From IMG/VR virus record IMGVR_UViG_3300032046_000001, positions 248,001 through 312,000 of that record: a stretch of DNA of 64,000 bases; one strand, written 5' to 3'. Shown here in pieces: positions 17,064 through 40,446 of this stretch (position 1 is the first letter of the stretch; each line of letters begins with the position of its first letter). The notes beneath the pieces are model-generated. The model made no database searches, was not told the origin of the DNA, and saw only the letters and a list, made by a program, of their open reading frames with translations. The position numbers and the translations under genes were made by a program.

Positions 17064-17498
17064 CTAAAGAGTATCTAGATACTTCTGGAACTCATCACGA
17101 GCTTTTTGATTCTTTTCTCGAATCTTGTCGTTCAGTTCCATTTCACGTTTTTCTTTCATATCCTTAATGAGTTGTTCAATTGTATTCGGATCAGATGTTT
17201 TGTGATCCTCCAATTGTTTTTGATTATATTGCTCGGATTGTGTACCAACACCGCTGTCATATGATTTCACTGTTACATCATGAAGGAATATTCTGGAAGC
17301 GATAAATATGATCGCACCAGCGGTCAGAAGTACTTTAATAACAGAATAAATAACAGCCAGGACATTATACCATGATTCATTAACTTCAAAAATGGTGAAC
17401 AATTTCTTAATTCCCCATTTCGAAGTCATAAAGATGATAATCATAAATATGACCGATGCCACAAACCAAATCAGCGGTTGAATATGAAAATTTAACAT
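17064..17498 (-). CDS. Membrane protein (2 TM plus coiled coil), probable SPFH partner
   Basis: Two hydrophobic helices; same transcription unit as SPFH. Confidence 0.75.
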   Translation of the reverse strand: MLNFHIQPLIWFVASVIFMIIIFMTSKWGIKKLFTIFEVNESWYNVLAVIYSVIKVLLTAGAIIFIASRIFLHDVTVKSYDSGVGTQSEQYNQKQLEDHKTSDPNTIEQLIKDMKEKREMELNDKIREKNQKARDEFQKYLDTL

Positions 17499-17669: not shown

Positions 17670-18440
17670 TTACTCTATATTCTCATCCCATCGTACCAAT
17701 GCTATTGGAGCTAATGCCCTCTTATGCTCAGTAGCTTCCATAATTTTTGAAATTCTCACTTCGTCTGGTGTTGTAGGTGTCTTACCACTGAGATATATTT
17801 TTGTGAGAACATCATCAAGAACATCATAATTTCCGATATCATCCTCATCATAATGATTTGGTGTTAGATCAGCAGTTGGTCGCTTTGTCAGAATTTTTTC
17901 GGGAATTTGAATATAGTCGTGTTGAGTACAAAGTATATTATTATAATAATGTGCTAGACCATATACATCTCTTTTTAGTAATTCACCTAATAATTCGATA
18001 TCTGATGCTCCATCGCCGAATTTTGTAAAATATCCAGTCATAATTTCTGATAAATTACAAGTTCCAATAACTTTACTATTATGTTCATTGGCGTATGCAT
18101 ACAATAGACACATTCTTATCCTAGACATTATATTTTCTTTAGTTCCATTTTGCCATAAGATTCCGGTATTATAAAAGCTATCGTATATATTTCTAATGTT
18201 TATAATAGAGTATGATACACCGAATTGGTGTACTAGATCAATACCATCCTTAAGATGTTCATTTTCCCAATATGGCATAAGCATAGCATGAATCTTGTCT
18301 TTTCCAACAGCCTGAACAGTCATTGCGAGACAAAGAGATGAGTCAATTCCACCAGATACTCCGAGGATAAAACCACTAGATGTTTCTAATTCTTCTCTGA
18401 CAAAATCAACAATAATTTGATTCACTTTTTCATAATTCAT
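17670..18440 (-). CDS. nadE: NH3-dependent NAD+ synthetase
   Basis: LGVSGGIDS, NIMSRIRM, GYFTKFGDG, PTADL, TEHKR. Confidence 0.95.
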   Translation of the reverse strand: MNYEKVNQIIVDFVREELETSSGFILGVSGGIDSSLCLAMTVQAVGKDKIHAMLMPYWENEHLKDGIDLVHQFGVSYSIINIRNIYDSFYNTGILWQNGTKENIMSRIRMCLLYAYANEHNSKVIGTCNLSEIMTGYFTKFGDGASDIELLGELLKRDVYGLAHYYNNILCTQHDYIQIPEKILTKRPTADLTPNHYDEDDIGNYDVLDDVLTKIYLSGKTPTTPDEVRISKIMEATEHKRALAPIALVRWDENIE

Positions 18441-19044
18441 TTTCCATTCTCCTTTTTATTTTTGATACTGTTGAATGAACTACTCCGTGTTTATTTGCAA
18501 TCTGTCTTTGAGTTAAATCATCTTTTTCAATATCAATTTTTATATCAATATATTTTTGATTTGACAACCTGTTAAGATTATTTTCACTCATTATCTTTTT
18601 TGTTTTTTCTGAATGTTTTTTTCCTTTATTGCTTTCACTTATTTTTATTTTAGTTTCTTCTGAAAGTAATCTACCTTTTGGATTATGAAGTTTGTTATGT
18701 TCTTTTTTAGGTATCATTATTAAATTTTCTAAAATATTATTTTCTTTATTTCTATCTTTATCATGATGAACACATTCATCAGATTTTAATTTATAATCAT
18801 TAAAAGTTTCATAAACTAATATATGAATTTTTTTAGTTTTCTTGTTTCCATTTTTAGATAAATTAATTACAAAATAATCATCATTATCTTTATGTTGTTT
18901 TATTATTTTTCCACTTATTTTATCATATTTAAAACTTTTAACTCGACCCAGATTACTAACTTGATAATCACAATCATAATCTAAAATATCTTTCCAAATT
19001 TCATTATCTAAATCATTAATATCTAAATTTTCGTATATTTTCAT
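18430..19044 (-). CDS. NUMOD4-HNH-NUMOD3-HTH homing endonuclease
   Basis: YQVSNLGRVKS, IHILVYETF, VHH..N..EN..ENL, HSEKTKKIMS; start re-placed at MKIYEN. Confidence 0.9.
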   Translation of the reverse strand: MKIYENLDINDLDNEIWKDILDYDCDYQVSNLGRVKSFKYDKISGKIIKQHKDNDDYFVINLSKNGNKKTKKIHILVYETFNDYKLKSDECVHHDKDRNKENNILENLIMIPKKEHNKLHNPKGRLLSEETKIKISESNKGKKHSEKTKKIMSENNLNRLSNQKYIDIKIDIEKDDLTQRQIANKHGVVHSTVSKIKRRMENEL

Positions 19045-19063
19045 TTTAATGCTCCAAGTATCT

Positions 19064-19125
19064 GAAAGAAAATTTTTATAATATAAAAATGACATCTTTT
19101 TAAAACGTTATTTTACTTATTCTTT
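19064..19125. repeat. Bipartite dispersed repeat, copy 1
   Basis: gaaagaaaattttta (19064-19078) plus 29-nt tttttaaaacgttattttacttattcttt (19097-19125); also at 59837-59887. Confidence 0.8.
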
Positions 19126-20143: not shown

Positions 20144-20455
20144 TTACCAAGCTCCCTCACTTTTATATCCAAGATCTTCTATTGAACTCAAATCAAAACC
20201 TCGTTCATCTTCGAACATCTGTTTTAACCTGATTCCCTTATTAATACCTTCTTGTCTCAAACATGCTGATAAATATAAAATATCTTCTCTTAAGTTTTTT
20301 AATCGTTGAATTCTGTCTTCGATTGCTCTATTTACACCTATTGTTTGTTTGTAAGATCTTTGGCTGTCTAAATTATCAATTTCAACTTTTATCAATCTTG
20401 CGATTTCAAATAACTCTTCACCATCAAAAAATCGACCTATTATTTTATTATCCAT
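20144..20455 (-). CDS. Hypothetical protein
   Basis: ORF coupled to pncA. Confidence 0.65.
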   Translation of the reverse strand: MDNKIIGRFFDGEELFEIARLIKVEIDNLDSQRSYKQTIGVNRAIEDRIQRLKNLREDILYLSACLRQEGINKGIRLKQMFEDERGFDLSSIEDLGYKSEGAW

Positions 20456-21125
20456 TGAAATCTCGATTTATTAGATTAATCACACTATCTGTTCTAATAA
20501 AAAGAGCACCTGCTTTCATCATCTCAAATAAGGCATTCTGTTTGCCTTCCTCAGTGATATGATATATACAATCATCAATTACCCATACTTTCTTTCCTCG
20601 TTTAAGAAGACCAAGTACAGCAGCTAAAACACAGTACTCAGTTGCAACACCATATACAAAGAAAGTATCAATATCGAGATATTTTAAACAAAAATCAATA
20701 TTTTGATTACCACCTGGGTTCGTTTCATCCCAAAAAACATTATAGCTTTGTTTTTCAAAAGTAATTTGACATGCTGCATCTAAAAGAATTTTTAAAAGTT
20801 CTTCACTATACATATCTTCTGAATCAATATGTATTGAATACTCTGGTGTTGTTGATTCTTCAATTTTACTACAACCATTTGTATCATCTTCACAATGCAT
20901 TGGAAATGGTCCACCATTTACATCAAGTTCTATTTCCGCTTCTTTATGTGCGGTATCTCCAAAATGTCTATCACCACAACCAAGTATTTTAATATTATTT
21001 TCATAACCATATTTTGTTAATTTAGAAATATTTGGAATAATTTTTTCAGAATCTTTTATATATAATTTACCATTCTTGGTCATAAAATCAACTAACGTAT
21101 CTACATCAAAAAAAGCGCATTTCAT
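20448..21125 (-). CDS. pncA: Nicotinamidase (isochorismatase family)
   Basis: DVDTLVDF...G.L, D.H, FPMHC, FEK, GVATEYCV catalytic Cys. Confidence 0.92.
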   Translation of the reverse strand: MKCAFFDVDTLVDFMTKNGKLYIKDSEKIIPNISKLTKYGYENNIKILGCGDRHFGDTAHKEAEIELDVNGGPFPMHCEDDTNGCSKIEESTTPEYSIHIDSEDMYSEELLKILLDAACQITFEKQSYNVFWDETNPGGNQNIDFCLKYLDIDTFFVYGVATEYCVLAAVLGLLKRGKKVWVIDDCIYHITEEGKQNALFEMMKAGALFIRTDSVINLINRDFNG

Positions 21126-21620: not shown

Positions 21621-22802
21621 TTAGGCGATCATTTCTTCTGTTATATCATAGTCCTTTTCAGTGTCATCTCTTTCAACTTCAAATTGAAAATCAACCATTA
21701 AAGACTCAATAACAGATTTTAATCCTCTCGCTCCAATCCCCTTTCTGTCAGCGATTTCGGCAATTCTTCTTATAGCATTGTCAGTAAAATTTAAATTAAT
21801 ATTATCAATTTCTAATAATCTCTGATATTGTTTGATTATTGAATCAACTGGGTCTGTTAAAATACGAGCTAATTCATCAATGGATAATCTATTAAGTACC
21901 GACACTATTGGAATTCGGCCAACTAATTCAGGTATTAAACCATACTGAATAAGATCATCTTGTTCTAAATAATTTAATAAATCGATATCGCGTTCAGCTT
22001 TAGACATCTTTGTATTAAAACCAATATTATTTTTACATAGACGAGCTGAAACAATATCAGAAAGACCATTAAAGGCACCACCAAATACAAATAATATATT
22101 TGATGTATCCATTAACAATCGATCTCCATGTGGGTGTTTTCTTGCACCTGTTGGTTGAATATTCATTACTGAACCTTCAATCATTTTTAACAAACCAAAC
22201 TGAACACCTTCACCTGATACGTCTCGTGTTATCGATGTACTTGCTGAACTCTTCTTGGCTTTTTTATCAATCTCATCAATAAAAATAATTCCCTTAGATG
22301 CTCGTTCAACATCAAAATCACAAGCGAGTAATAACATTTGAATCATTGATTCAATATTATCACCCACATAACCTTCTTCGGTTAATGTTGTTGCATCAGC
22401 AATAATAAATGGAACTCTCAATATTTTTGATAATGTCTGTGCAAAAAGTGTCTTTCCAGATCCAGATGGACCTATTAAAAGAATATTACTTTTTTGGACA
22501 TTAAGGTTACATAGAATCTTTAACATATGATTATAGACACCAACAGAAATTATTTTTTTAGTTTTTTCTTGACCAATAATATATTGATCTAAAATAATTT
22601 TAATCTCTTTTGGTGTCATGATTTTTTGTTTTTTAGGCTTTGAATTTTTAATTTGATCAACTTTAAGATCCGAATTAATATTTTCAGCCGTTAATGCCAA
22701 TCTTGCTGTATCAATACAAGAATCACAGATACAAATATTCGGATCGCTCGATTCAATTATTAATTTATAATCTGTACTATGACAGAAGCTACATTCTCTC
22801 AT
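21621..22802 (-). CDS. clpX: ATP-dependent Clp protease ATPase subunit ClpX
   Basis: CSFC...CDSC zinc domain, GPSGSGKT, IFIDEIDK, TRDVSGEGVQ, RKHP loop, IGF loop, GARGL. Confidence 0.96.
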   Translation of the reverse strand: MRECSFCHSTDYKLIIESSDPNICICDSCIDTARLALTAENINSDLKVDQIKNSKPKKQKIMTPKEIKIILDQYIIGQEKTKKIISVGVYNHMLKILCNLNVQKSNILLIGPSGSGKTLFAQTLSKILRVPFIIADATTLTEEGYVGDNIESMIQMLLLACDFDVERASKGIIFIDEIDKKAKKSSASTSITRDVSGEGVQFGLLKMIEGSVMNIQPTGARKHPHGDRLLMDTSNILFVFGGAFNGLSDIVSARLCKNNIGFNTKMSKAERDIDLLNYLEQDDLIQYGLIPELVGRIPIVSVLNRLSIDELARILTDPVDSIIKQYQRLLEIDNINLNFTDNAIRRIAEIADRKGIGARGLKSVIESLMVDFQFEVERDDTEKDYDITEEMIA

Positions 22803-27221: not shown

Positions 27222-27488
27222 TTGTCACTTTCATTTTGTTCTGATTTTTCGGATGAATTAAATATCAATATACTCTCCCAATTTATCCTGTCTTCTGTAC
27301 AGAATTCTTCGTCGAACTTTGATGAGAAATTATCAATTATATTATTATATGCGATATTGAATTCATTATTTTTTCTTTTTTAAAACATCTTTTAATTTCA
27401 GATTTTTTAAATTATCTAATTTATTAATGTGATAATAGACTATATTATTATTAATATAGTCTTCAATTTGTCTTGTTAATTCATTCAT
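27218..27488 (-). pseudogene. Internally deleted type II restriction endonuclease remnant (PmeII-family-like), frameshifted in an A-tract
   Basis: Read manually: MNELTRQIEDYINNNIVYYHINKLDNLKNLKLKDVLK joined (other frame) to KNNEFNIAYNNIIDNFSSKFDEEFCTEDRINWESILIFNS; resembles the N- and C-termini of PmeII-type REases; ATGA overlaps at both ends. Confidence 0.6.
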
Positions 27489-28287
27489 ATAATAACTTTA
27501 AAATAATCATCAACTGTTTTAAAATATTCGTGATTGAGTTCTATTCCGATTCCATGACGATTTAACTTCGCAGCAACTTTTAACGTTGTACCACTTCCCA
27601 TAAACGGATCTAAAATATTATCATTGGGTTGTGTAAAAAGTTTTATAAACCATTCAGGAATCCATATTGGAAACACAGCACTATGATTTTTATTATTACA
27701 TTCAGTAGCACCATATAAGACATTAGTTGGATAAACCATATCTCTTTTGATCCAATTAGAGACGTTTTTTCCAAAACCACTTCCAACTTTCGATTGATCT
27801 CTAATTTTATCCGTTTCACTTAAATTTTTTAATCTTGATTGTGACCAATCACCAATTGGAATCATTACATTATCTTGAAACATGTTGAATTTTTTATCTT
27901 TATTGAATTGATAAAGATGTTCCCATGAATCACGAAATCTATTTGGCCATTTTCCAGGAAAACAGTTCTTTTTATGCCAGATGAATTCCTCAGTCCATAA
28001 CCATCCCTGTTTTCTCATAGCCAAAACAAGTTCTATTACATATGTATGTCTTTCTCCTCCAACTGCACACTCTTTTATATTTAAAATAAACGTACCTGTC
28101 GGTTTCAAGACTCTTAAAAGTTCTTGTGATATTGGAATAAACCATTCTATATATTTATCTGGATGTACACCACCGTATGTATTTTTCTCTGATTCGCATA
28201 TGGTGGAGATGTTAATATTAAGTCTATTGAATTACTATCTATTTCTTTTAATTTATCTGAACAATCACCAAGTAATAAACGTATCAA
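27485..28287 (-). CDS. N4-cytosine/N6-adenine DNA methyltransferase (beta class), one-base frameshift at 28182-28186
   Basis: Upstream frame has TTG start, LGDC, IDLILTSPPY; downstream frame has IWHK, HSAVFP, ILDPFMGSGTT; span of 803 nt is one base short of in-frame. Confidence 0.9.
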
Positions 28288-28303: not shown

Positions 28304-31087
28304 TTATTTTATTTTCTCTCCAAGTAGGATCTTATCTATTATTCCTGAATATTGACCAACTTCAAAAAGACCTTTTATGATACTTCTTTTTGGATCTGAA
28401 AAACCAAGACTTAGAATCCATGATTCGAATGCCGGAACTTGTTGTATACTATGCCATTCTGGTTTAACATTCTCTCTATTTTCAACCAATCTCCATTTTG
28501 TATAACCACTCCACATTAATTGACTAATGACAGCTTCAATATGAATATGATGAATCTTTCCATTATTATTATAAATTTTGAATAATTTTTCTGCCATTTC
28601 ACCAGGAATTTGATTATCACTAAAATGATGAAAAGCATCACAAGCAACCGAAAGATCAGCAACAATATCATCTTGTTTTAAATCACCATCAGATTTTGCA
28701 CCTCTAATATTTGCAACACCTGACGTATGAAATGTTCTTAGAATCAATTGAGTAGACCGTTCACCTAATGTTTGTGCTGCAATAATACCAATATATTTAC
28801 TATTTAAAATCTTGTAAAGATTACCATAACATTTGTGACAAATTTTATTACTTCTACAATATATCGGTGATCTCAAAAGAATGATTTTACCAATTAGATT
28901 CTTATAATTTTCTTTTGTAATTTCAACATATTCATTATTATCATTTAAATAATAACGATATAATAACATCTCGGCTTTTTGTACAGAATCGACATTGATA
29001 GTTAAGTGATCTCTTGTTCCACAATCTTCTAAATCAAGATCCTTTTGAAGATTAACACAAGAAAAATTTAATTTTCTTGAAAGATAGCCAGATTCCCCTG
29101 TATTTAAAGCAACATCTAATAATCCTTTTCTACATCCGTATGTTGATATAAAAAATTCTTCAGGTGTTAAACCATCTAATAAACTCGATTTAACTGGTGT
29201 TGGTATAATCTCACCTTTAAAGTTCGAAATAAAACCTCTTGATAGAATAATTTGTCTTGCTTGATCCCATGTTCCTCTAGATCCAGAACTAATCATATAA
29301 GAATAGTTAAAATTTTCTTTCAAAAAGTTTTCTGTTTCCAGACTGGAAATTTTATTTAACTGGGTTACGATATTATCAGATTCATATAATTCTTTCTTAA
29401 GCGAATCATCTTTTAATTCGAATGAATCCAATGACATTGTTGGACCAAATAAGGTAGCGTATTTAAAACCGCAATTTTTAATCTGATCTAAAATTTCAGC
29501 TAGGATCGTGTAGTCATATTTTGATTTAATATCTTCTAAAATATTTAATAGTTCTTTCTTTGATATTATCTTATCAATTATAGGATAATCATTCGGTAAA
29601 CAATCATTGAATATTTTTCTACTTTCTGTAATTTTTTGACCTTTACAAACGACCATCTTTTTCAATTTTGGAAATTGATTTGAAGTTAATGCGTATATAC
29701 CAAGAATCATATCTTGAGAATGAGTAGTTGTTAATAATCCATTTGCGGGATTACTCAAATTTTTAGTTATTAAAAATTTATCATAGACTTCTTGTTTTGA
29801 TTCTTCTGATATAGGCACATATACAGCCATCTGATCACCATCAAAATCTGCATTAAAACAACCACAAACTAACGGGTGAATCTTGATTGTATTATTCCCA
29901 TGAATTCGATATACTGTTTCATTATTATCATCTTTCTTTTCGAAAATGACAGAATTATTATTATCTAATTTTATTTTGAAACCTAACATACCCAATCTGT
30001 GAAGAGAAGGTTGTCGATTAATAATACACACTTGAGGATGTTGTTCAAAATATTCTTTGACAAATTCGAATAAATAATATGATTTTGTAAGAATCGTCTG
30101 ATCTAATATTTGAATCGCACTATTAAGAAATTTAACTATTCCGCGATATGTCATTTCTTTTGCGATGTCAATTTTAAATAATTCAAGAATCATACTATAA
30201 GGTAAAATACACTCATCTAATTTCAACATTGGATCTGGTGTGATCACAGCCCTACCTGAAAAATCAATTCTCTTACCTAATATATGTCCTCTGATTAAAC
30301 CATCTTTTTCTGACATTGACGATAAAATATAACCATATAGTTCATTCACATCTTTTTGAAGTTGATGATAATATTGATAATATATTTTTTTATCATTCGC
30401 AATATCATAGTTTGTATTGGCCATAATTTCTTTTTTGGTTAATAACCTGATATAGAATCTATTTATTTTATCTACGATTTGGTTACGATTATTTTTTTCT
30501 GTGATTTTTGATGCAGGACGTAAATCAGCAGGTAAGACAATAACTTCATTAATCAATACGTTATGAATATTGTCATATATATATTTCCATTTTGGATCAT
30601 CCAACTTATATTTTGAAGTTTCATACAATAATTTTATAACAGCTCCCATTTTATCCCATCTTTCAGAATCAGATGGAATATTATTAGGATCATCTGTCAC
30701 TAAATATTTTTCACCTTTTTTATATAATATACTTCTTTCATTTGAAATTAATATATCAACCAGGGATTTAATTTTAGAACCACATAAACTGGAAATCAAA
30801 TCGTAAAAAATTGGATTCATAACTGGTAAAGGAAGTTTGATTTTTGCAAATCTTTTTCTTCTTTCACCACAATTAGTTATTTCCACACCACATATTTTAC
30901 AAACTTCACCTTCACCAGAAAGTCCATAAAAAGTTCCACATTGACATGTATAATTTTTTACTGGACCAAAAATCTGTTCAGAAAATAAACCATCTTCTGT
31001 AAATCTGCCACGATTATTAATTATTTTTGAAGTTTTGATTTCTTTCAAATCTTCACAAAAGTCATGTATATCTAAGAGTTTCGACAT
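28304..31087 (-). CDS. rpoC: Phage multi-subunit RNA polymerase beta' subunit
   Basis: GLFSEQIFGP, CQCG...CKICG, GKRIDFSGRAVI, NRQPSLHR, catalytic NADFDGDQM, GERSTQLILRTFH. Confidence 0.97.
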   Translation of the reverse strand: MSKLLDIHDFCEDLKEIKTSKIINNRGRFTEDGLFSEQIFGPVKNYTCQCGTFYGLSGEGEVCKICGVEITNCGERRKRFAKIKLPLPVMNPIFYDLISSLCGSKIKSLVDILISNERSILYKKGEKYLVTDDPNNIPSDSERWDKMGAVIKLLYETSKYKLDDPKWKYIYDNIHNVLINEVIVLPADLRPASKITEKNNRNQIVDKINRFYIRLLTKKEIMANTNYDIANDKKIYYQYYHQLQKDVNELYGYILSSMSEKDGLIRGHILGKRIDFSGRAVITPDPMLKLDECILPYSMILELFKIDIAKEMTYRGIVKFLNSAIQILDQTILTKSYYLFEFVKEYFEQHPQVCIINRQPSLHRLGMLGFKIKLDNNNSVIFEKKDDNNETVYRIHGNNTIKIHPLVCGCFNADFDGDQMAVYVPISEESKQEVYDKFLITKNLSNPANGLLTTTHSQDMILGIYALTSNQFPKLKKMVVCKGQKITESRKIFNDCLPNDYPIIDKIISKKELLNILEDIKSKYDYTILAEILDQIKNCGFKYATLFGPTMSLDSFELKDDSLKKELYESDNIVTQLNKISSLETENFLKENFNYSYMISSGSRGTWDQARQIILSRGFISNFKGEIIPTPVKSSLLDGLTPEEFFISTYGCRKGLLDVALNTGESGYLSRKLNFSCVNLQKDLDLEDCGTRDHLTINVDSVQKAEMLLYRYYLNDNNEYVEITKENYKNLIGKIILLRSPIYCRSNKICHKCYGNLYKILNSKYIGIIAAQTLGERSTQLILRTFHTSGVANIRGAKSDGDLKQDDIVADLSVACDAFHHFSDNQIPGEMAEKLFKIYNNNGKIHHIHIEAVISQLMWSGYTKWRLVENRENVKPEWHSIQQVPAFESWILSLGFSDPKRSIIKGLFEVGQYSGIIDKILLGEKIK

Positions 31088-31092
31088 TAATT

Positions 31093-31518
31093 TTATATCC
31101 CCAATTTGTGTAAATTAAAAAAATTTGATATTTTACCAATTATTGAGTTCTCTTTTTTCTCTACCTTTTTCATATATTCTTGATGATCATATGGTTCATA
31201 CTCTATATAATTAAATGGAGTGAAATAACAATTATTTAAATTATAAGTTCTGATTAAATTTTCAATTAATTTAATTAAATCATTTGATAATACTTTATAT
31301 TTGACATTAGCTGATAAACAAAATAAATCAGTATATGGATCGGCATTACAATGATCAGCATCTAATTTAATACTAATTAATTTATTTTTGCCATCTGTTA
31401 TTCTAACTGAATATTTATCAATTATATAATTTGGATCTATTTTTGTTATTCTGTAAATTTTATTATTATGAATCATTCTCTCAGGTACAAGTTTTTTTGC
31501 TATTACAAACTGTTTCAT
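31093..31518 (-). CDS. Putative ubiquitin-conjugating E2 (UBC-fold)-like protein
   Basis: HCNADPYTDLFCL resembles the E2 HPN-x7-C active site; LIENLIRTYNLNNCY resembles I..LL..PN.DSP; TAATG-coupled to the upstream ThiF-like gene. Confidence 0.55.
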   Translation of the reverse strand: MKQFVIAKKLVPERMIHNNKIYRITKIDPNYIIDKYSVRITDGKNKLISIKLDADHCNADPYTDLFCLSANVKYKVLSNDLIKLIENLIRTYNLNNCYFTPFNYIEYEPYDHQEYMKKVEKKENSIIGKISNFFNLHKLGI

Positions 31519-32411
31519 TATGCTGCACCAGACTCTGGAAGAAGATTTATAATATAATTATTTTGAGTCTGTGTAATTGAAATGATGTAATAGAGTTCAG
31601 GTTCATTTGAATTATTTATTAGATGTGACATTGTTGAAATGATATCATTAGCTGATTGAATTGAATTTTTGGGAATTTTTCTAATTGGATATTTATTAGA
31701 ATCACCAATTGTTATTAGAACATCTTTATTTCTATTCTCCTGAATTATATCAGTTACATTCTCTTCAAAATTTAATAATTTCTTAGATGCTTCATAATCT
31801 ATAATCATGTTTCTATTATTATATTTTTTCTTGATATCATTGGATACTTCATCTAAATAATCAAGAGATATTTCTTTCACTATTTGATTATCAATCATAT
31901 AATTAATAAAACCACTTTGTAGAAAAGATGTTGCTATCATTGTTGCTTTTCTTAAATCATTTTTTGATAACAGTGTTGTATATCGGCCTTCATAATTCTT
32001 ATCATATGTTATATTTTTTCTACAATCTACAACAAGATATCTGGACGTGATATACAATCTAACATCTATTTTATTTTTGCGATTATAAACAAAATCTCGA
32101 CAATCAATTATTAAATCTGAATATGGGAGTTCCGTAATTTCTTCTTCATATCTAGTTGTTAATATTTCAACATCTATATTACTTTGATCTTTTATGATAT
32201 CATGAAGAACTGTTGTTTTATATTTTCCAACATCACTCTTTCTATATATTGAATTATATGTATTCTTCATTTCAACTCTATCATAATCAACCAAGATTAA
32301 TTTTTGTAAATTATCCAGTTCGGATAATGATTGAGACAAAAAACTACCTATGGTACCAAGACCAATAACTGCTACTGTTTTTATAGAAGATTCCTCCACA
32401 ATTTTTTTCAA
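31518..32411 (-). CDS. ThiF/MoeB (E1-like) adenylation-domain protein 2
   Basis: VAVIGLGTIGS, LVDYDRVEMKN, DVGKYKT, IIDCRD; extra C-terminal domain ending LLPESGAA. Confidence 0.88.
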   Translation of the reverse strand: MKKIVEESSIKTVAVIGLGTIGSFLSQSLSELDNLQKLILVDYDRVEMKNTYNSIYRKSDVGKYKTTVLHDIIKDQSNIDVEILTTRYEEEITELPYSDLIIDCRDFVYNRKNKIDVRLYITSRYLVVDCRKNITYDKNYEGRYTTLLSKNDLRKATMIATSFLQSGFINYMIDNQIVKEISLDYLDEVSNDIKKKYNNRNMIIDYEASKKLLNFEENVTDIIQENRNKDVLITIGDSNKYPIRKIPKNSIQSANDIISTMSHLINNSNEPELYYIISITQTQNNYIINLLPESGAA

Positions 32412-32530
32412 TATCTAAAATTGGTGGGTAATTAAAGTTAAATAAAATATATTTTTAATTTGTTATTTAAATAAATTTTTTATTCCCATAAAAAAATAAA
32501 AAAATAAATTAGGATAATTATAGGATAAGG

Positions 32531-32558
32531 GAAGGGATGGAATTTCTTCCATCCCTTT
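32531..32558 (-). terminator. Hairpin downstream of the Ubl gene (terminator or stabiliser)
   Basis: GAAGGGATGGAA/TTCCATCCCTTT inverted repeat. Confidence 0.65.
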
Positions 32559-32606
32559 TTCCACTTATGTACTACACCCGGTATATCATATTATAATATT
32601 GGGTTA

Positions 32607-33161
32607 TTAACCCTTGCGATCGGCAGGCTTCGTGAACTCCAGGGTCAAATCAGTCGATGTCAAAACGTAGTCGTATGCTACCTCGGTCGTACCGTTGACC
32701 AAAGCTTTGGAACCGGCAGCGATATTGAACGCTCCACTGAGCAAATTGAATACTTCCTGGACTGCATGTCCTACGGTGTCTTCGATCTCCTGTTTGTTGG
32801 TACCGCAGGTAACGACAATCTTGGTGTTGACACAGCCGTCATTGGCATTGGTGACAGTAAACGTACCGGAAACCGCAGCAAGGGCAACCCTGGTAAAATG
32901 GGCAATGAGAAGTTCCACCAAAATAGCCTTGGGTTGTTTTCCCAGACCGGACATACCATTTTCCTCGGCCAGCGTGAGCAGATCGGTAACAGACATTGCA
33001 TTCAATTGTTCCCGGCTAAGAACCTCGGATTTCTCGACCATATCGTTCTCAATTACTTTGGCAATCATCTCGACGGTCTGTCCGTCCAATCCAGTGATCC
33101 CACGTCCAGCAGCGATTTGAAGAAGTTCGGCCTTTGACTTACCATTCAGTGCTTGATTCAT
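32607..33161 (-). CDS. Ubiquitin-like (beta-grasp) modifier with two N-terminal Rho-N/SAP-like repeats and C-terminal Gly
   Basis: Repeats LNGKSKAELLQIAAGRGITGL and LNAMSVTDLLTLAEENGMSGL; C-domain IVVTCG...VGHAV..V...L...FNI..ALVNG...YVL...TLEFTKPADRKG-COOH; lies in an E1/E2/JAB locus. Confidence 0.8.
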   Translation of the reverse strand: MNQALNGKSKAELLQIAAGRGITGLDGQTVEMIAKVIENDMVEKSEVLSREQLNAMSVTDLLTLAEENGMSGLGKQPKAILVELLIAHFTRVALAAVSGTFTVTNANDGCVNTKIVVTCGTNKQEIEDTVGHAVQEVFNLLSGAFNIAAGSKALVNGTTEVAYDYVLTSTDLTLEFTKPADRKG

Positions 33162-33334
33162 AAAAATAATTCTCCTTTTGGAAATAGATTAGGTTCACTA
33201 AGTGAATCCTTTGAGATAAAATACAGCGGCGACATTAATTATTTTTTTCTATCTCCTAAATAATTATAGCACCTCCCTTTGGATTTATCCATGAAGTTAG
33301 AGAGTTAAGACAACTCTCTCTTGATGGATTCTAT

Positions 33335-33601
33335 TTACTGAGTAAATTCCTGAAGCTTTTTCACTTTTCCCTCAATCCAATCAATACGATTCTTGGCATC
33401 CTGTTGACCAGCCTTAGCAGCCGAAATCTGATGATTTAGTTTCTGCACTTTTCGTGTCAAGGATTCAATTCGTTGTTCCTCCATTTGCGATGCCTGTTGA
33501 AGTTTCTTCTCAGCAACTGCAAACATTTTCAATGCGTTACCAAGAACTGTGGGAGCAACATTAATACCAAAATGAGATAATAAAATATAAAACCAGTCCA
33601 T
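33335..33601 (-). CDS. Small coiled-coil protein upstream of the Ubl gene
   Basis: GGAGG RBS; heptad-rich; follows promoter copy 5. Confidence 0.75.
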   Translation of the reverse strand: MDWFYILLSHFGINVAPTVLGNALKMFAVAEKKLQQASQMEEQRIESLTRKVQKLNHQISAAKAGQQDAKNRIDWIEGKVKKLQEFTQ

Positions 33602-33643
33602 TACAGACCTCCTTTACAATATTAAAAAGTACGAATTGTACCT

Positions 33644-33665
33644 TTCACATATTTATTATATATAG
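33644..33665 (-). promoter_or_regulatory. Conserved phage promoter-like motif, copy 5 (variant)
   Basis: CTATATATAATAAATATGTGAA upstream of the coiled-coil/Ubl unit. Confidence 0.6.
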
Positions 33666-33717
33666 ATATAATCGTATATACAAGAATTTAAATATTTGGG
33701 TGCTTTGTATAATTAAA

Positions 33718-34419
33718 CTATACTGGGAACTGTTTGGCTAAAACTTCACCTGTGAGAATATCGAAATCATTCTCACAGGTGGTATCGAGTTGACCAAGGA
33801 TACAGATCTTGTAAAATCGACACAACACAATCCATGCCGCTCCCATGTTTGCGAATAACAATTGTGGTTCTGCTTGATGCAATGCCTCACATCCGAGACG
33901 CTGAGGGTGTTGTCCATCACCAACGGATATCTCTTCATGGTATCTGGTAATTGACGCAGTGTAGTTTTGTCCTGCAATCCGAACGTTTGTCAAAACATCG
34001 CCGGTGTAGAATCCATTACCCCCAGAAATTAAAACTACATTTTGCAGGGTAGCAACTTTTTCTGCAATCAACGCTCTGGTATCATGATTGTCAACACACA
34101 CTAATACAATATCATCTTCTTGGATGATACTACTAATGTTGCTCTCACTGAGATATTCAGGAACCGAATGGATAGTTAAATCATACTTCTGCATGAGTTC
34201 GGTGGCTTTAATCTCGGCTTTATTACCGAAGTTATAAAAATCCTGTCTCTCCCGATTACGCTGCTCGAAGCTATCTCCGTCTACGATAGTTACCTCGAAG
34301 GTGTCAGCCTCTTCGCCTTCTGCTGGTTGCGGATGATAATAATTGAGGAATTGGCACAACGGATCAAGTAATTTAGTACCAATACCACCAGCACCTATAA
34401 CTTTAATCGACCGATTCAT
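33718..34419 (-). CDS. ThiF/E1-like ubiquitin-activating enzyme (PRTRC ThiF-like)
   Basis: VIGAGGIG, VDGDSFEQRNRERQ, NKAE, CVDNHDTR, ISGGN, candidate catalytic Cys in RLGCEA, PQLLFAN. Confidence 0.92.
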   Translation of the reverse strand: MNRSIKVIGAGGIGTKLLDPLCQFLNYYHPQPAEGEEADTFEVTIVDGDSFEQRNRERQDFYNFGNKAEIKATELMQKYDLTIHSVPEYLSESNISSIIQEDDIVLVCVDNHDTRALIAEKVATLQNVVLISGGNGFYTGDVLTNVRIAGQNYTASITRYHEEISVGDGQHPQRLGCEALHQAEPQLLFANMGAAWIVLCRFYKICILGQLDTTCENDFDILTGEVLAKQFPV

Positions 34420-35611
34420 ATGCTGAAATCTCCTCTTTTGTCATAATGATTACTCCTTCAGAGTCAATCATGTTGCCATTAGAATCATATGATAATTCAA
34501 AATCGCGGTTGTTGTTTGGTGTGTGTTCACCATAACATCCCATAGTTGTCAATAATAAGTCATCGACCAATCCACCTTCCATTGCCTGAATAGCAATATT
34601 ACGATAATGACACTTTGGACAGATGGTATAATCAATTAGTGGATAATAATCTGTATCATCACTACCATAACAATCAGGACGGGCAATTGGAGATGTTGGT
34701 GAATATTCAGGAGTTTTAGCAGGACTTGGAAGATACTTCGTTTCCGACGGAACATATGTGTTGTTTGATTGGGAAGAACATTTGATAAGTTTACCACCAA
34801 CGAATTTATATACTACATCGGGTGTATAAACCATGTTCTCATACCATTCTATGGGAACCTCAACAGCATCCATATCAACGTCTAAACTAAAATGAAATTT
34901 AGTTGCAACCGATTGCGCTGTTACATCTGTCATATTATGAGTCGATACTTTAGATGCGGCATAATCTTCCCATACAGCACCCGAAGACACATACTTGGTT
35001 TCTTCCCGACTTGTGATTGTAACATCAAGATATCTTAATATTTCCTCCTCTTTAAGTTGAAATCTATTGCCGTTAATAACAATCGCTGCCGTGACCGATG
35101 GGGTATCTGTATTTATGTGTCCAAACACAATATGAATACCATCCAACTCACCCTCACTACCTTTGTCGGTACCACTATGAAACGCCGACATTGCACCACC
35201 GTGTGAGTGTAGTGTTCCAACATACATAAAATCTTTCGGTGGACTGGAATTCTTCCAATCCGTTGACGCGCCCGAAATTTTCTGATTGGGAACATCAAAT
35301 AAATAAAACTCGGTATATGGATTATAGAAAATCCGTATACCAGCTTCAGATTTGTACGTTTCATAGATCTGTTTGAAAAACTTAAGACCTTGAGCTAACA
35401 AATCTTTGTGAATCTTCGGTATCTTCATCTCCCCAAACGGTTGTAGTTTGGGGAGATGACTGATTCCATTAACCTTAGTTAAACTTCTCAATAATTGTTG
35501 ATTCTTTAGAACAAAGTTGCCGTTACCGGCAACGATGTATAAAAGATCCTGGTCTTCAGGCAAGACATAATCCTTCGGTAATATAATAACAGGAATTTCA
35601 CCAAATTTCAT
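34403..35611 (-). CDS. JAB/JAMM (MPN+) metallo-isopeptidase, PRTRC protein A-like, with C-terminal extension
   Basis: YIVAGNG.F, KSEAG, VPNQKIS, GTLHSHGGAMSAFHSGTDKGSE, GIHIVFG; start re-placed at MKFGE. Confidence 0.9.
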   Translation of the reverse strand: MKFGEIPVIILPKDYVLPEDQDLLYIVAGNGNFVLKNQQLLRSLTKVNGISHLPKLQPFGEMKIPKIHKDLLAQGLKFFKQIYETYKSEAGIRIFYNPYTEFYLFDVPNQKISGASTDWKNSSPPKDFMYVGTLHSHGGAMSAFHSGTDKGSEGELDGIHIVFGHINTDTPSVTAAIVINGNRFQLKEEEILRYLDVTITSREETKYVSSGAVWEDYAASKVSTHNMTDVTAQSVATKFHFSLDVDMDAVEVPIEWYENMVYTPDVVYKFVGGKLIKCSSQSNNTYVPSETKYLPSPAKTPEYSPTSPIARPDCYGSDDTDYYPLIDYTICPKCHYRNIAIQAMEGGLVDDLLLTTMGCYGEHTPNNNRDFELSYDSNGNMIDSEGVIIMTKEEISAYESVD

Positions 35612-35612
35612 A

Positions 35613-38027
35613 TTAATTATCCTCACTAACATTTGGAATTGTTGATGGATAATATCCATCAGAAAACGTATGAGTATTCCCATTTACAAAATTCGGGAGA
35701 CTCTCATAAACAACATGTGAATGGTTTTTAGATAATCTGGGGTCTAAAATACCATATCTCTTAAAATCTGGATTATTCTGTGAACTTACCACAGCCTTTG
35801 AACGGAAAGATCCTGTTTTCACAAAAACAGGATCAATTAACATATACAACTTTCCGAGGTATGTGTTGTCATCATTGAAAACGAATAAATTATCACTTTT
35901 GGTACATAGATCACCTGTCTGCCAAGGAATCTTGGCCAAGTTTATTGTTTCGGGTGTTCTGGCTGATGTAACTACGTTGAAGTTATTGGTTAAATCTTCA
36001 ACAGTAATTGTCAGACCATTTCCACACAATATAAGAGGCTTTTCACCATCGACAATAAATGCGTCAATTCTGTTTATCACCTTTTTCGGAAATCCTAATA
36101 TTCCAGGATTCTTAGCTTGGATAAGACCAACTTCAATACCATTCAGAGACTTGGATGCTTTCCTAATAGATCCGATGTAAACTCTACCGTTTGATAGGTT
36201 GATATATTGAGAACTAGTTGTTTCTTCACCACATCGTAATTCAAAATTCAAATAACCATTTGATCTGGCAAATGCTGTAATCGTCCAGATTTTACCAATT
36301 GTATCAGGATTGTTCCAGTTAGGACATACAACCTCATCACCAACACTGAAATTGATATCGACATCATATGATGGTATATGTAACTTGGTACCATCATTCG
36401 TCAATATATCCTCAAGTGCTGTTTCGCGGAAGAAAGTACTGCTCCAGATATTGGATGAGTCGTTACTGGAAAAAATGCCTATGCCTTTTACAATACGAAA
36501 ATCTCGATCGGTTATAATCTGATCCAAAAATCTGAATGTTCTGGATTGAGTAATCCTTGGGTCATTTGCTTCAAAAATTGAGAAATCACCATTATAGATT
36601 GAATCTACAGAGATTCCTCGCTCATCACCATCACCACCGAAGAATATGTGGAGAATGTTGTAAGAATTATTCTGAATACGAAGCATTCTCCCGGTGAAGT
36701 AGGTCCGATATTGATTATTAAAGATCACATAATCCTTACCAGAAACCAATTCAGTATCGCCAGCCTTCACAGAATCGATTACGTCATATGTACCATCCAA
36801 TGCCAGAAAGAACTTTGAACCGATGACGAATTCAATCGTATTATCTCTGGCTAACCTAATCTTATCTACAACCTCATAGGTATTCATAGATTTGATTTTG
36901 ATTATTGTGCCTGATGATACGGTTTTACCATCAACTGTTAATGATTGTAAATAATTCGTTCTTTGAGCGGCAACATCTGTTTCCCATTGGGCTAATAAGG
37001 CTGGTGTTAACTCAACAGTAATTTTTTCATTATTGAGATTAACCAGTTCCACCTGTTTAGGTGTATTAAAATTTCCCCTAATGGTATCAATATACCAATC
37101 TGCTTCTTCATATATTAATTTGTCGCCAATACTTACGACGCTCTCAACTAACCTGAAATTTTGATATATGGTTGATCCATTACCTCCAGATAGTTGTTCG
37201 TCAAGTGGTACAACAAACACTCTCTCAAAGGTTGGAACTGTTCTAGAGACAACAAAAGTATCAATCTCCTGATACAATGTTTTATCGTGCATTATCAATG
37301 GAATGTTAAATCCGAATGTTGGTTTTTGACTAGCCATTGACCAAGCCAGAAAGGAATTCATCGGCGGTGTATTCTTGTATTTATCATGACGACAGCGATA
37401 TTCCGCTGCAAATGGTGCTGCCCAATACAGAGCAATTAATTCTTCAACAGCAGATGACAGAGTATGAGTTTGTTTTGACCATGAACGTTTGTTACCACCA
37501 AAACAAACTTCATTGCCACTACTAACATTAAATAAATTTGCATATCCCAAATAGTCGCCGGATGCTCCCAATGGATGATTTCGGAAAAATACCCGACAAT
37601 AGGGAACTTCAAATACATCCTTTTTTTCCTGAACGAAGAGAAGAAACACTATATATGGTAATTGGATTCGGAGCGAGTACGGTATTTGTTGCCCTTCCAG
37701 CAACGATTCTAGTCCTAGTGCCGCCTGTCCACTCTTCTTGGTTGTTCTTGTTTCTTCAACAAAATCCCAGTCAAACTTCAAATGTCTTGATCTTGGAGCT
37801 TCCTCAATAACCAGAACTCTTGCACCACCTGAGCATGGAATATTTAATCTACAATTCCTGGGCAAAACATGACAGTCAGATCCCAACTGACTGGTAATTC
37901 GGGCAATATAATCTGCTGTTCGTATTAATTTTTTCCTGAAGACTGGTTGGGCTTCACCATTTTCTCCAATAATGGATTCAACAAACGATGTAGTTTCTTT
38001 GTCGATTATTAACGTGGGATTTGTCAT
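35613..38027 (-). CDS. Prokaryotic E2 family D-like (PRTRC protein B-like) domain fused to ~550 aa of uncharacterised beta-rich domains
   Basis: LPYIVFL, FFRNHPL, YANLFNVSSGNEVCFG, YWAAPF..WS..S in the N-terminal ~250 aa. Confidence 0.75.
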   Translation of the reverse strand: MTNPTLIIDKETTSFVESIIGENGEAQPVFRKKLIRTADYIARITSQLGSDCHVLPRNCRLNIPCSGGARVLVIEEAPRSRHLKFDWDFVEETRTTKKSGQAALGLESLLEGQQIPYSLRIQLPYIVFLLFVQEKKDVFEVPYCRVFFRNHPLGASGDYLGYANLFNVSSGNEVCFGGNKRSWSKQTHTLSSAVEELIALYWAAPFAAEYRCRHDKYKNTPPMNSFLAWSMASQKPTFGFNIPLIMHDKTLYQEIDTFVVSRTVPTFERVFVVPLDEQLSGGNGSTIYQNFRLVESVVSIGDKLIYEEADWYIDTIRGNFNTPKQVELVNLNNEKITVELTPALLAQWETDVAAQRTNYLQSLTVDGKTVSSGTIIKIKSMNTYEVVDKIRLARDNTIEFVIGSKFFLALDGTYDVIDSVKAGDTELVSGKDYVIFNNQYRTYFTGRMLRIQNNSYNILHIFFGGDGDERGISVDSIYNGDFSIFEANDPRITQSRTFRFLDQIITDRDFRIVKGIGIFSSNDSSNIWSSTFFRETALEDILTNDGTKLHIPSYDVDINFSVGDEVVCPNWNNPDTIGKIWTITAFARSNGYLNFELRCGEETTSSQYINLSNGRVYIGSIRKASKSLNGIEVGLIQAKNPGILGFPKKVINRIDAFIVDGEKPLILCGNGLTITVEDLTNNFNVVTSARTPETINLAKIPWQTGDLCTKSDNLFVFNDDNTYLGKLYMLIDPVFVKTGSFRSKAVVSSQNNPDFKRYGILDPRLSKNHSHVVYESLPNFVNGNTHTFSDGYYPSTIPNVSEDN

Positions 38028-38056: not shown

Positions 38057-39040
38057 TTAATTTCTCTTATCTGCATGGATTAGATCATTATAATCGTATG
38101 CAGATGTCATGATACAACTCGTCCAATTACATCCCTCACAAACTTTATTTTGGTCATATTGTAAATTATTTTTCAATTCATCCAGATTCATTAAATATTC
38201 ATCAATTGTCATTGATGGTGTTTTCAATCCTCTGATTCTTAAACATAACCTAACCATACCATCTGCATCGATAACAATATTATCCAGTGATTGAACATGG
38301 CATTTGAAATTATAGGGTAAATTTTCATATAATATCTTCAAACTTTGAGGCATATGAATATTATAGTTTTTTGCCTGTTCTAATATTTCTTTCAATTCAG
38401 GTGTTTTGTGGACTATCAAGTCGCTATTTTTTTCTATTCCAGCAAAATCATAATATTTATTTTTATAAGCATCAATAAAAGATATTACACTATTGATACC
38501 ATGACCAGTTAAAAGTTCCAATGTTTTAATTAAATATTTATAATTTCTGCTATCACATGTTACTTCCGCAACAGGATCTTTTATTCTGTCTTTATATTTT
38601 AATAAACAATTCAATCCATAGAGACTTTTAAAATATCTGTCCTTATCATACTGTTCACTGAATATTATGGGGTCGATTGAAGTTGTAAAACCCATTACTT
38701 CTCCAACTTCTGAAAAAAATCGATCTAATAAATCTGTACATGTACCATTAGAAATTATCGTGTATAAAATACTGTTTTCATTACAGTATTTTATAATATC
38801 AATTAAGTCATTATGAAGTAATGGTTCACCTCCCATAAAAATATGAAAACATTCTGGATTATTAATTTTCATCAAGTCCAGTATTTTCACTATATTAATA
38901 TATTTAATTTGATACTTATTAAAATAATAAATATTTGGATATGGAGCATCGAGATAATATTTTGCAATCCTACAATACTCACAGCTTAAATTACATTGTC
39001 TATTCAAAAACCAAGTCATGACCTTTATATCTTTTATCAT
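38057..39040 (-). CDS. Radical SAM enzyme with SPASM/twitch-like C-terminus
   Basis: CNLSCEYC, MGGEPLL, ISNG, IDADGMVRLC, CEGCNWTSC. Confidence 0.92.
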   Translation of the reverse strand: MIKDIKVMTWFLNRQCNLSCEYCRIAKYYLDAPYPNIYYFNKYQIKYINIVKILDLMKINNPECFHIFMGGEPLLHNDLIDIIKYCNENSILYTIISNGTCTDLLDRFFSEVGEVMGFTTSIDPIIFSEQYDKDRYFKSLYGLNCLLKYKDRIKDPVAEVTCDSRNYKYLIKTLELLTGHGINSVISFIDAYKNKYYDFAGIEKNSDLIVHKTPELKEILEQAKNYNIHMPQSLKILYENLPYNFKCHVQSLDNIVIDADGMVRLCLRIRGLKTPSMTIDEYLMNLDELKNNLQYDQNKVCEGCNWTSCIMTSAYDYNDLIHADKRN

Positions 39041-39450: not shown

Positions 39451-40446
39451 TTAAAAGGTGTATGTCAAAGCACCAATGCTCTGGTTCTGACTAAGTTGCC
39501 AATCGGCATAGTGTGTCAGTTCGAGGTCGAGATTTTTGATTCCAGTTGGTAAAGTAATCGCTACTGCATGACCATTATCGAATGGGAAATCAATATCAGC
39601 CATTATTGATTTCGAATCAATTTCTCGATAATTATAGTCAACTGTTACCTCACCTATTCCTAACTTGGCACCAGCCAACCAGGACACAACATTATCACCA
39701 ACAGTCACAGCATAATCACCGTATATAGATGATGTATCATAGCCGATTTCAGCCATTGCCTCCCTATAGGCATTCCCTTCATAGAAATCATAATATCCGA
39801 CTGCTCCAACAATATATGCCTTATCGCCGATCTGGATGCCGATCTGACCACCATTCATAACATCATTGAAATATCCACCAGTGGCAAAACACGAAAGAGT
39901 CCGGTCATCATTAACAGCGAAATAGTTGGATGCAACACCTTCTCCACGAAAGACATCAGTATCGAACAAAAGACCAGAATCACCAGGAGTCTGAAATGGT
40001 AATTCGCTTTTACCGAGATGTAATTCAAGACCTGGAAACAAATCCGGGGTAATATTCAAATTGGCAACATCAATCATGGCATCATCTTGTTGTTGATCAC
40101 CAACTTGTTGGGTTCCAGTATTAAGTCGAAAATACAAATCGGCCTGATTATCCAAAGCAATACCGAGGCCAAACCGGATGCGATAATCCTGGGAATATTC
40201 ATTGAGTTGGTGATCATACAATGTGCGATAACGGGCATCACCATCAACAAAGAATTTAGAAGGATCTGTAACGCCGGGATTTTCTCTCTCGAAAATTTCC
40301 CACTCTTCCTCAGCGGTTTCAGCATAGACGGTATCCTCAGTTCTGAGACTGGTGGTTGTACCTTCTTCATAGGTGTTGAAAGCATAGACATTGATATGAG
40401 CAAAGAGCACCAACAATAAAACAAACACGACATAATACTTTTTCAT
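39451..40446 (-). CDS. Outer-membrane beta-barrel protein (putative porin family)
   Basis: Signal peptide AYA-like cleavage, GDARYR, RIRFGLG, GKSELPF..LLFDTD, alternating beta strands, C-terminal LTYTF. Confidence 0.8.
   Translation of the reverse strand: MKKYYVVFVLLLVLFAHINVYAFNTYEEGTTTSLRTEDTVYAETAEEEWEIFERENPGVTDPSKFFVDGDARYRTLYDHQLNEYSQDYRIRFGLGIALDNQADLYFRLNTGTQQVGDQQQDDAMIDVANLNITPDLFPGLELHLGKSELPFQTPGDSGLLFDTDVFRGEGVASNYFAVNDDRTLSCFATGGYFNDVMNGGQIGIQIGDKAYIVGAVGYYDFYEGNAYREAMAEIGYDTSSIYGDYAVTVGDNVVSWLAGAKLGIGEVTVDYNYREIDSKSIMADIDFPFDNGHAVAITLPTGIKNLDLELTHYADWQLSQNQSIGALTYTF

Follow-up and report, generated by a model that had tools for sequence, protein, structure and literature searches.

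The characterised prokaryotic systems that conjugate ubiquitin-like (Ubl) proteins, namely the Cap2/Cap3 pathway of CBASS (an antiphage signalling system that relies on cyclic oligonucleotides), Bil and Bub, are bacterial antiphage defences. The Cap2 system conjugates a whole enzyme by way of the Gly or Ala that is conserved at its C-terminus, and the reaction is undone by a JAB enzyme; the proteins conjugated in this way are cyclases, of which the Enterobacter one ends in Ala (PMC10097602). The activating enzyme (E1) of Bub has no catalytic Cys, and the sole invariant residue of its crossover loop is a Tyr that forms a Ubl~tyrosine oxyester (PMC11601596). Fusions between Ubl and E1-type proteins are also known, the Ubl domain being N-terminal on some ThiF proteins (PMC1779556). 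Here we analysed a window of 64,000 nucleotides, bases 248001-312000 of the IMG/VR record IMGVR_UViG_3300032046_000001, in which an E1-like gene (31518-32411, minus strand) and a gene for a protein resembling E2 conjugating enzymes (31093..31518, minus strand) lie just ahead of the gene for the beta-prime subunit of a phage RNA polymerase. A first-pass annotation of the sequence had proposed an E1-like/E2-like pair at this place, an identity that is borne out by fold matches and by an H-P-N...Cys signature. The pair, in which the E1-like protein carries a presumed Ubl domain at its C-terminus, is conserved in ~65 related phages and appears to be undescribed, as the literature searched gave no description of this phage system. 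We consider it somewhat more probable than the alternatives taken together that the E1 activates its own fused Ubl domain and hands the activated end to the E2 cysteine. With similarly restrained confidence, we propose that the pair is a minimal conjugation module of the ubiquitin type, encoded by the phage and produced along with its RNA polymerase.

The E1-like open reading frame (ORF) encodes 297 amino acids (aa), or 293 if translation starts at an alternative GTG at 32399. Residues ~1-190 (31842..32411, minus strand) constitute the adenylation domain. Pfam ThiF matched residues 12-109, and the AlphaFold2 model, built on 42 homologues, reached a mean pLDDT (predicted local distance difference test) of 86.5. 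When this model was submitted to Foldseek, UBA5, MccB, Cap2, ThiF and MoeB were retrieved at E~1e-9. As judged from the model, the domain is a complete Rossmann-like adenylation fold with GxGxxG, and its closest structural match is the E1 domain of CBASS Cap2. The motifs read G17-L-G-T-I-G22, D42-Y-D44 and G-K-Y-K65-T. Conservation was counted over 143 distinct E1-like homologues that are only 30-55% identical overall (some positions have smaller denominators, as given). The glycines G17, G19 and G22 are kept in 137/137, D42 and D44 in 140/140, K65 in 142/142, D103 in 143/143, R105 and D106 each in 142/143, and R111 in 141/143. Of the three motifs that the first-pass annotation had listed as retained, the glycine and aspartate motifs are thus near-invariant, whereas in K-x-K-T only the second Lys, K65, is conserved. 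In a profile alignment to MoeB, K65, D103 and R111 correspond to K86, D130 and R135, and D103-C-R-D106 to the DCTD motif. One could imagine that both proteins have no catalytic activity and, being derived from E1 and E2 folds, serve the phage RNA polymerase as structural accessory subunits. Their constant place at the head of the polymerase genes, the loss of the canonical E1 Arg and the occurrence of Cys-less E2-like copies among family members would agree with this. However, the glycines, the Mg-binding Asp, Lys65, Arg111, the H-P-N...C signature and the C-terminal tail are all near-invariant at such low overall identity, which is the pattern of active sites and not of scaffolds, and we regard inert subunits as highly improbable.

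The annotation had noted that no obvious catalytic Cys loop is present, and the larger alignment agrees. The crossover-loop region, residues ~130-149 (31965..32024, minus strand; CRKNITYDKNYEGRYTTLLS), is a lower-confidence loop of the model that connects strand 125-129 to helix 150-166. Cys130 was considered as the catalytic residue, being invariant in the first 42 sequences. In the larger set it is kept in 129/143 homologues and replaced in the other 14 (F in 8 of them, otherwise G, S, T or I). The lineages that lack it still retain the tail and the E2-like gene, so that Cys130 is not an essential catalytic residue. Among the 143 homologues no Cys is conserved in the loop 130-149; Tyr144 is invariant instead (141/141), and G142 is kept in 138/141. 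The remaining candidate, Cys104, sits within the D-C-x-D motif that MoeB shares and therefore does not mark a catalytic loop.

The adenylation domain is followed by a helical linker (residues ~191-229; 31725..31841, minus strand) with helices assigned by DSSP at 185-198, 206-209 and 215-228. The linker lies outside every E1 structural match, and its pLDDT falls to 67-69 in blocks 191-210. Beyond it, residues ~230-297 (31521..31724, minus strand) form a strand-strand-helix-strand-strand module, presumed to be a Ubl domain. DSSP places its strands at 231-235, 244-246, 274-281 and 286-293 and its helix at 254-266, with pLDDT 84-92, and the order of these elements in the model fits a β-grasp core. 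The extra C-terminal domain and its LLPESGAA ending had been pointed out in the annotation, and this ending is strongly conserved. The tail P-E-S-G-A-A-COOH (31521..31538, minus strand) belongs to a consensus E-T-G-[A/S/G]-A-COOH, near-invariant in the homologues: E293 in 131/140, T or S at 294 in 130/140, G295 in 135/139, A, S or G at 296 in 138/140 and A297 in 136/140. It differs from the G-G that usually ends ubiquitin-like modifiers. A trivial origin of this conservation, as a by-product of the ribosome-binding site of the next gene, was rejected: (i) all four synonymous codons occur for each of the tail Thr, Gly, Ala and Ala, and (ii) the tail is kept just as well when the next gene overlaps by 1, 4, 47 or 65 nucleotides as when it starts 572 nucleotides later. 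Selection therefore acts on the peptide and not on a translation signal.

The annotation had further suggested that the tail might be trimmed after the Gly by the neighbouring JAB enzyme. This idea was not supported by the comparison, as the protein ends exactly two residues after the Gly in the ~65 loci and these two residues are themselves conserved as [A/S/G]-A. In CBASS, moreover, Ala at the C-terminus is an established E1 substrate (PMC10097602). In contrast, the Ubl protein encoded upstream ends in K-G followed by variable extensions (none, C, N or YK), as expected for a trimmed precursor. By comparison of the two sequence patterns, G-A-A looks like the mature, reactive end as encoded.

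A naturally split relative supports the autonomy of the module. In a distant locus (L079, on a 141-kb contig) the order is a 190-aa E1, an 84-aa protein, a 203-aa E2-like protein with CHPN...C, a 171-aa ORF and rpoC. Ending in HPVTGAA, the 84-aa protein can be aligned to the C-terminal half of the fused module. The E1 and 84-aa ORFs overlap by 32 nucleotides (17456-17487), the second being in the +1 frame across an A6 run (17466-17471). The split point falls in the linker, and deletion of one base would restore the fused gene. An assembly error does not explain the split, as 8 contigs, representing at least 4 samples and assemblers, have it; searches for further split genes of this type returned only L079 itself. 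The free 84-aa gene makes the module a separable unit that stands at the place expected of the Ubl in an E1-Ubl-E2 operon. The surroundings of this locus are rearranged, with SbcCD genes between its two cassettes, and E1-Ubl-E2 is still found just ahead of rpoC.

These observations bear on the main rival explanation. Canonical E1s (UBA1, UBA2 and UBA3) have a C-terminal β-grasp domain that recruits the E2. By analogy, the phage module could serve to dock the E2 or to regulate, as the ubiquitin-fold domain does in eukaryotic E1s, and the pair would then act on the upstream Rho_N-ThiS-like Ubl, so that two E1s and two E2s would share one pathway. Nearly all loci do encode a bona fide Ubl, ending in K-G, upstream of the pair. 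In the E2-like protein the N-terminal helix known from canonical E2s is missing, so that docking would have to be unusual. Yet a docking domain has no reason to keep an invariant, strictly terminal tail of small residues, and in L079 the module occurs as a free-standing gene. The upstream cassette, moreover, already has its own canonical E1 and an E2-like protein, and one locus (L075) carries the pair beside rpoC with no upstream cassette at the syntenic site, in a record that is only 29% complete. We therefore judge the docking explanation unlikely, if the most serious of the rivals, and retain the fused module as the presumed substrate of its own E1.

The second gene encodes an E2-like, UBC-like protein of 141 aa. 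A word-based search with this protein recovered close relatives only, whereas a profile search of 1.8 billion representatives gave 278 matches at E<=1e-3, mostly of 105-125 aa; the genes downstream of the distant E1 homologues proved to be homologous to it. When 61 diverse members are compared, invariance is limited to H56, N58 and C67, and P57 is present in at least 90%. With few exceptions the spacing in the family is H-P-N-x8-10-C. The active-site stretch of the window protein, H56-C-N58...F66-C67-L (31318..31353, minus strand), which the annotation had read as an E2-like HCN...FCL site, is present as such, but its relatives read H-P-N, not H-C-N. At the surveyed loci, H-P-N-x6-12-C occurs in 61 of the 63 distinct E2-like genes; in L027, one of the remaining two, an insert of 20 residues separates HPN and Cys. 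H-P-N...Cys, with its usual spacing, is the signature of E2 enzymes, as read from the sequences of the family. A model of the E2-like protein at pLDDT 95 shows a five-stranded sheet in which strand 46-52 is followed by the HPN loop, Cys67 and then a helix; it has no N-terminal helix. A UBC fold and a conserved Cys were what the annotation expected of 31093-31518. The top 24 structural matches of the model are all E2/UBC proteins, which makes a UBC-type fold probable, and C67 is the invariant Cys of the 61 members. A profile comparison with PDB sequences aligned the strand, HPN and Cys to the active site of Pex4p, at a non-significant E of 1.1. In Pfam, 1 of the 61 members matched UQ_con (E=0.017) and none the Prok-E2 families. 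Taken together, these data lead us to conclude with good confidence that the protein is a divergent, minimal UBC-like E2. Variants of the family were also observed (P0126, P0174, P0213 and P0148), including tandem E2-like/E2-like fusions whose first copy lacks the Cys, an arrangement that recalls E2/UEV pairs, and a Cys-less protein of 300 aa with a lengthy extension at its C-terminus (P0148). Three distant E2-like proteins lie on contigs too short to show their context.

The HPN signature also weighs on a second rival, in which adenylation serves no conjugation at all: the pair would make a thiocarboxylate sulfur carrier of the ThiS/MoaD/TtuB type, or an MccB-like peptide-nucleotide product, for the modification of nucleic acids or cofactors, with the E2-like Cys acting as a relay. 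MccB, ThiF and MoeB are among the closest structures, the E1 catalytic Cys is not conserved, and the same conserved block includes a gene of the radical-SAM type (window) and one of the GTP-cyclohydrolase-I type (relatives). Against this, the invariant H-P-N...Cys typifies transfer to an E2, and neither sulfur-carrier nor microcin systems have it. The genes scanned showed no rhodanese domain, no cysteine desulfurase and no PP-loop thiolase. MccB chemistry, in addition, requires a terminal Asn, not Ala. Adenylation without conjugation thus seems to us very unlikely.

In the mechanism that we favour, which is the self-tagging envisaged by the first-pass annotation, the E1 domain, which probably works in trans within a homodimer, would adenylate the terminal Ala carboxylate of the fused module (of the free module in L079). 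The activated end would then pass to Cys67 of the E2-like protein, either directly or via Tyr144 as in Bub pathways, and be ligated to an amino group of the target. The tag would be the E1 protein in its entirety (in phages of the L079 type, the free 84-aa module), comparable to the conjugation of an entire cyclase by CBASS Cap2 through its C-terminal Gly or Ala. Such a tag would need no trimming, and the neighbouring JAB enzyme could reverse the linkage.

The two genes are translationally coupled. The stop and start codons of the E1-like and E2-like genes overlap in TAATG (31516..31520, minus strand), base 31518 being shared, as the annotation had reported; in relatives an overlap of 1 or 4 nucleotides is the commonest arrangement. 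The rpoC-like beta-prime gene (28304..31087, minus strand; Pfam Rpb1 domains 1-5) begins with an ATG at 31087, leaving a spacer of 5 nucleotides after the E2-like stop and not the 6 given previously. The adjacency to rpoC, which the annotation had expected to be conserved, recurs in the ~65 distinct phage loci surveyed (30-56% protein identity) and in the distant L079. The order at the ~65 loci is fixed: radical-SAM, ~850-aa protein, JAB, small E1, Rho_N-ThiS-like Ubl, E1-Ubl fusion, E2-like, 0-3 small ORFs, rpoC and rpoB. The genes around the pair are on the minus strand throughout. Upstream of the E1-like gene lies an AT-rich intergenic region of 195 nucleotides (32412..32606, minus strand) with a 9-bp hairpin at 32530-32550, after the upstream Ubl gene, and no terminator-like site was found between 32411 and the rpoC start. 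This layout suggests that the E1-like gene may head a transcription unit running into rpoC, and the fixed gene order supports co-expression of the pair with the polymerase. A functional link between the two is an inference from gene order only, and on the same ground phage or host transcription machinery would be the candidate target. The full proposal, of a self-conjugating E1 in a large jumbo-phage clade that is tethered covalently, via a mini E2, to the phage or host transcription machinery, strikes us as quite unlikely as a whole. If true, it would mean a virus-encoded ubiquitin-style switch on RNA polymerase and, together with the neighbouring E1/E2/Ubl/JAB cassette, a two-modifier system in a bacteriophage.

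Several observations weigh against self-conjugation of the E1 or against its tie to the polymerase. First, the Arg of N-L-x-R-Q is lost, as the annotation had recognised: MoeB R73 aligns to N53 of N-S-I-Y, and position 53 is N in 114, K in 9, R in 5, T in 5 and S in 4 of the 143 homologues. The absence of the canonical Arg leaves E1 activity in doubt; the invariant extra residues R105 and R131 might compensate for it. Second, the assignment of the module to the β-grasp class is presumed from the order of its elements within the full-length model. The module had no sequence match in Pfam families or PDB chains, and hhalign gave a probability of 0.1% or less when it was compared with the neighbouring ThiS-like Ubl. 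Protein-atlas searches gave no lead with the 84-aa protein of L079, whose ESM Atlas model was poor (pLDDT 0.49), and nothing usable with residues 212-297. Third, one locus (L060) has an E1-Ubl protein and no E2-like gene at the syntenic position. Fourth, the genomes are broadly collinear and form one clade, so that gene order is weak evidence for a polymerase tie and no proof of the target. Fifth, two RNA-labelled runs were flagged as probably DNA and yielded few 151-nucleotide pieces, which fell on rpoC and the upstream Ubl gene, and hence give no support for expression. A complex prediction with two E1 copies and the E2-like protein scored 0.00, which is evidence neither way. As a separate observation on L060, its E1-Ubl protein (727-2022) has the tail ETGGA and Thr at residue 130, and the place of the E2-like gene ahead of rpoC is taken by an ORF for an acidic coiled coil of 116 aa.

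Upstream of the pair lies a second, complete Ubl cassette (32607..38027, minus strand) that is conserved across the clade. It comprises, all on the minus strand, (i) the Ubl gene (32607-33161), whose product has N-terminal Rho_N/SAP-like repeats and a ThiS-like C-domain and ends in KG, (ii) a gene for an 88-aa coiled coil, (iii) a canonical small E1 (33718-34419) in which N-x-x-R-Q is present, (iv) a JAB protein (34403-35683) with the motif H-x-H-x7-S-x2-D, and (v) an 804-aa protein (35613-38027) with an N-terminal E2-like N167...C175 that is invariant. When the E2-like family was compared by hhalign with the 804-aa protein's N-terminus, the match lacked significance (0.27%) but placed the two conserved cysteines together. 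The annotation had contrasted an AT-rich, older pair with this first cassette. The composition holds, with G+C (GC) contents of 0.25 for the E1-like gene, 0.21 for the E2-like gene, 0.28 for the polymerase genes and 0.37-0.49 for the cassette. The difference in age does not, as the cassette is equally conserved in the ~65 loci. A recent GC-rich island was accordingly rejected: the cassette is syntenic in these same loci, its proteins are most similar to those of L008, which is also the nearest relative of the phage, and the GC trait is shared. In every relative the Ubl gene exceeds its neighbours by 10-20 GC points, which makes this richness a property of the gene itself and no sign of recent arrival.

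Other genes of the region are recorded as observations. A radical-SAM protein (38057-39040, minus strand) has an N-terminal core that matched the PADLOC prokaryotic-viperin models (E=2.6e-12) and Pfam Radical_SAM; the match covers the generic SAM core only, and in all relatives this gene is the first of the conserved block. Both the window (39451-40446, minus strand) and L008 (1-820) encode, at a similar position, a secreted protein that matched Porin_5 weakly. Between rpoC and rpoB, a DNA methyltransferase gene (27485-28108, minus strand) occurs in this phage only, the relatives having nothing or a small ORF. Downstream of rpoB, on the minus strand, are genes for a ClpX-like AAA+ unfoldase with a ClpX zinc finger (21621-22802), whose presence near two tagging systems is suggestive from its position, an isochorismatase/nicotinamidase-like protein (20448-21125), an HNH/NUMOD homing endonuclease (18430-19095) and an NAD synthase (17670-18440). 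Gene calls were inspected for four relatives, L003, L005, L007 and L008; in each of them the gene after rpoB is of the GTP-cyclohydrolase-I type 2 (PF02649; 15774-16640 in L003), and in L005 and L007 an AP_endonuc_2 TIM-barrel gene comes after it. In the window, neither family was matched in the three ORFs immediately after rpoB.

The source record of 312,420 bp with direct terminal repeats is that of a jumbo phage. No isolated phage matched it at the DNA level, and its beta-prime protein is at most 29% identical to anything in the phage collection. The family is missing from isolated phages, where the only match was a ThiF N-domain at 27% identity in Flavobacterium FpV4-type phages. Among prokaryotes (one genome per species, 185,579 species) the E1/E2 family was not found, generic ThiF matches being the only ones, and the family is thus phage-specific. 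Near-identical DNA was found in several sediment and soil metagenomes. In these DNA strains both ORFs are intact, the E1-like gene showing 5 synonymous and 3 non-synonymous changes; the change in the tail is synonymous.

How does the pair compare with the described systems? It resembles type II CBASS (Cap2/CD-NTase/Cap3) in that a whole enzyme would be conjugated through a terminal Gly or Ala. However, Cap2 is an E2-E1 fusion with a catalytic Cys in both domains and a separate cyclase substrate, whereas the phage E1 is fused to its presumed substrate module, has no conserved catalytic Cys and is accompanied by a separate E2 of ~110-140 aa. No CBASS cyclase or effector domain was found among the neighbours of the pair, which is encoded by a phage and not in a defence island. 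With Bub (6E/DUF6527) the pair shares an E1 devoid of catalytic Cys that has an invariant crossover-loop Tyr, a parallel that we treat as a lead by analogy, and the occurrence of fused components (Ubl-E2 in Bub). The Bub E2 uses a Ser, whereas the phage E2-like protein keeps H-P-N and an invariant Cys; in Bub a JAB peptidase is fused to the E1, and the Ubl must be cut from the E2, whereas the phage module already has a free C-terminus. Bil (BilABCD), with separate genes for Ubl, E2, JAB and E1, resembles the upstream cassette more than the pair; a weak BilD match was obtained (E=1e-3), and Bil is a bacterial antiphage system, unlike the phage-encoded pair.

The ThiF-ThiS and MoeB-MoaD systems likewise use a minimal single-domain E1 of ~190-250 residues with D-C-x-D-x4-R that acts on the C-terminal tail of a small protein. 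They differ by having no E2, a G-G end, a retained N-L-x-R-Q Arg and, usually, zinc-binding Cys pairs. The ubiquitin-fold domain of eukaryotic E1s is, as here, a small domain after the adenylation domain of a protein that works with an E2, but such domains have no conserved small-residue tail at their end and are not separate genes. In the N-terminal Ubl-ThiF fusions the Ubl has no free C-terminus, unlike the C-terminal module of the phage protein. The literature searched contained no E1 fused C-terminally to an apparent substrate, PMC1779556 having only N-terminal Ubl-ThiF fusions. Set against the defence systems of bacteria, what we describe would be an unusually compact and complete version of Ubl conjugation kept as a core feature of an uncultured jumbo-phage clade. 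It combines a Cap2-like E1 domain, a Bub-like Cys-less E1 with an invariant Tyr, a eukaryote-like H-P-N...Cys mini E2 of barely 110 residues and the fusion of an E1 to its apparent substrate. If active, the pair would provide a small and tractable model for minimal E1-to-E2 transfer, and it would prompt one to ask what a phage tags in the course of infection.

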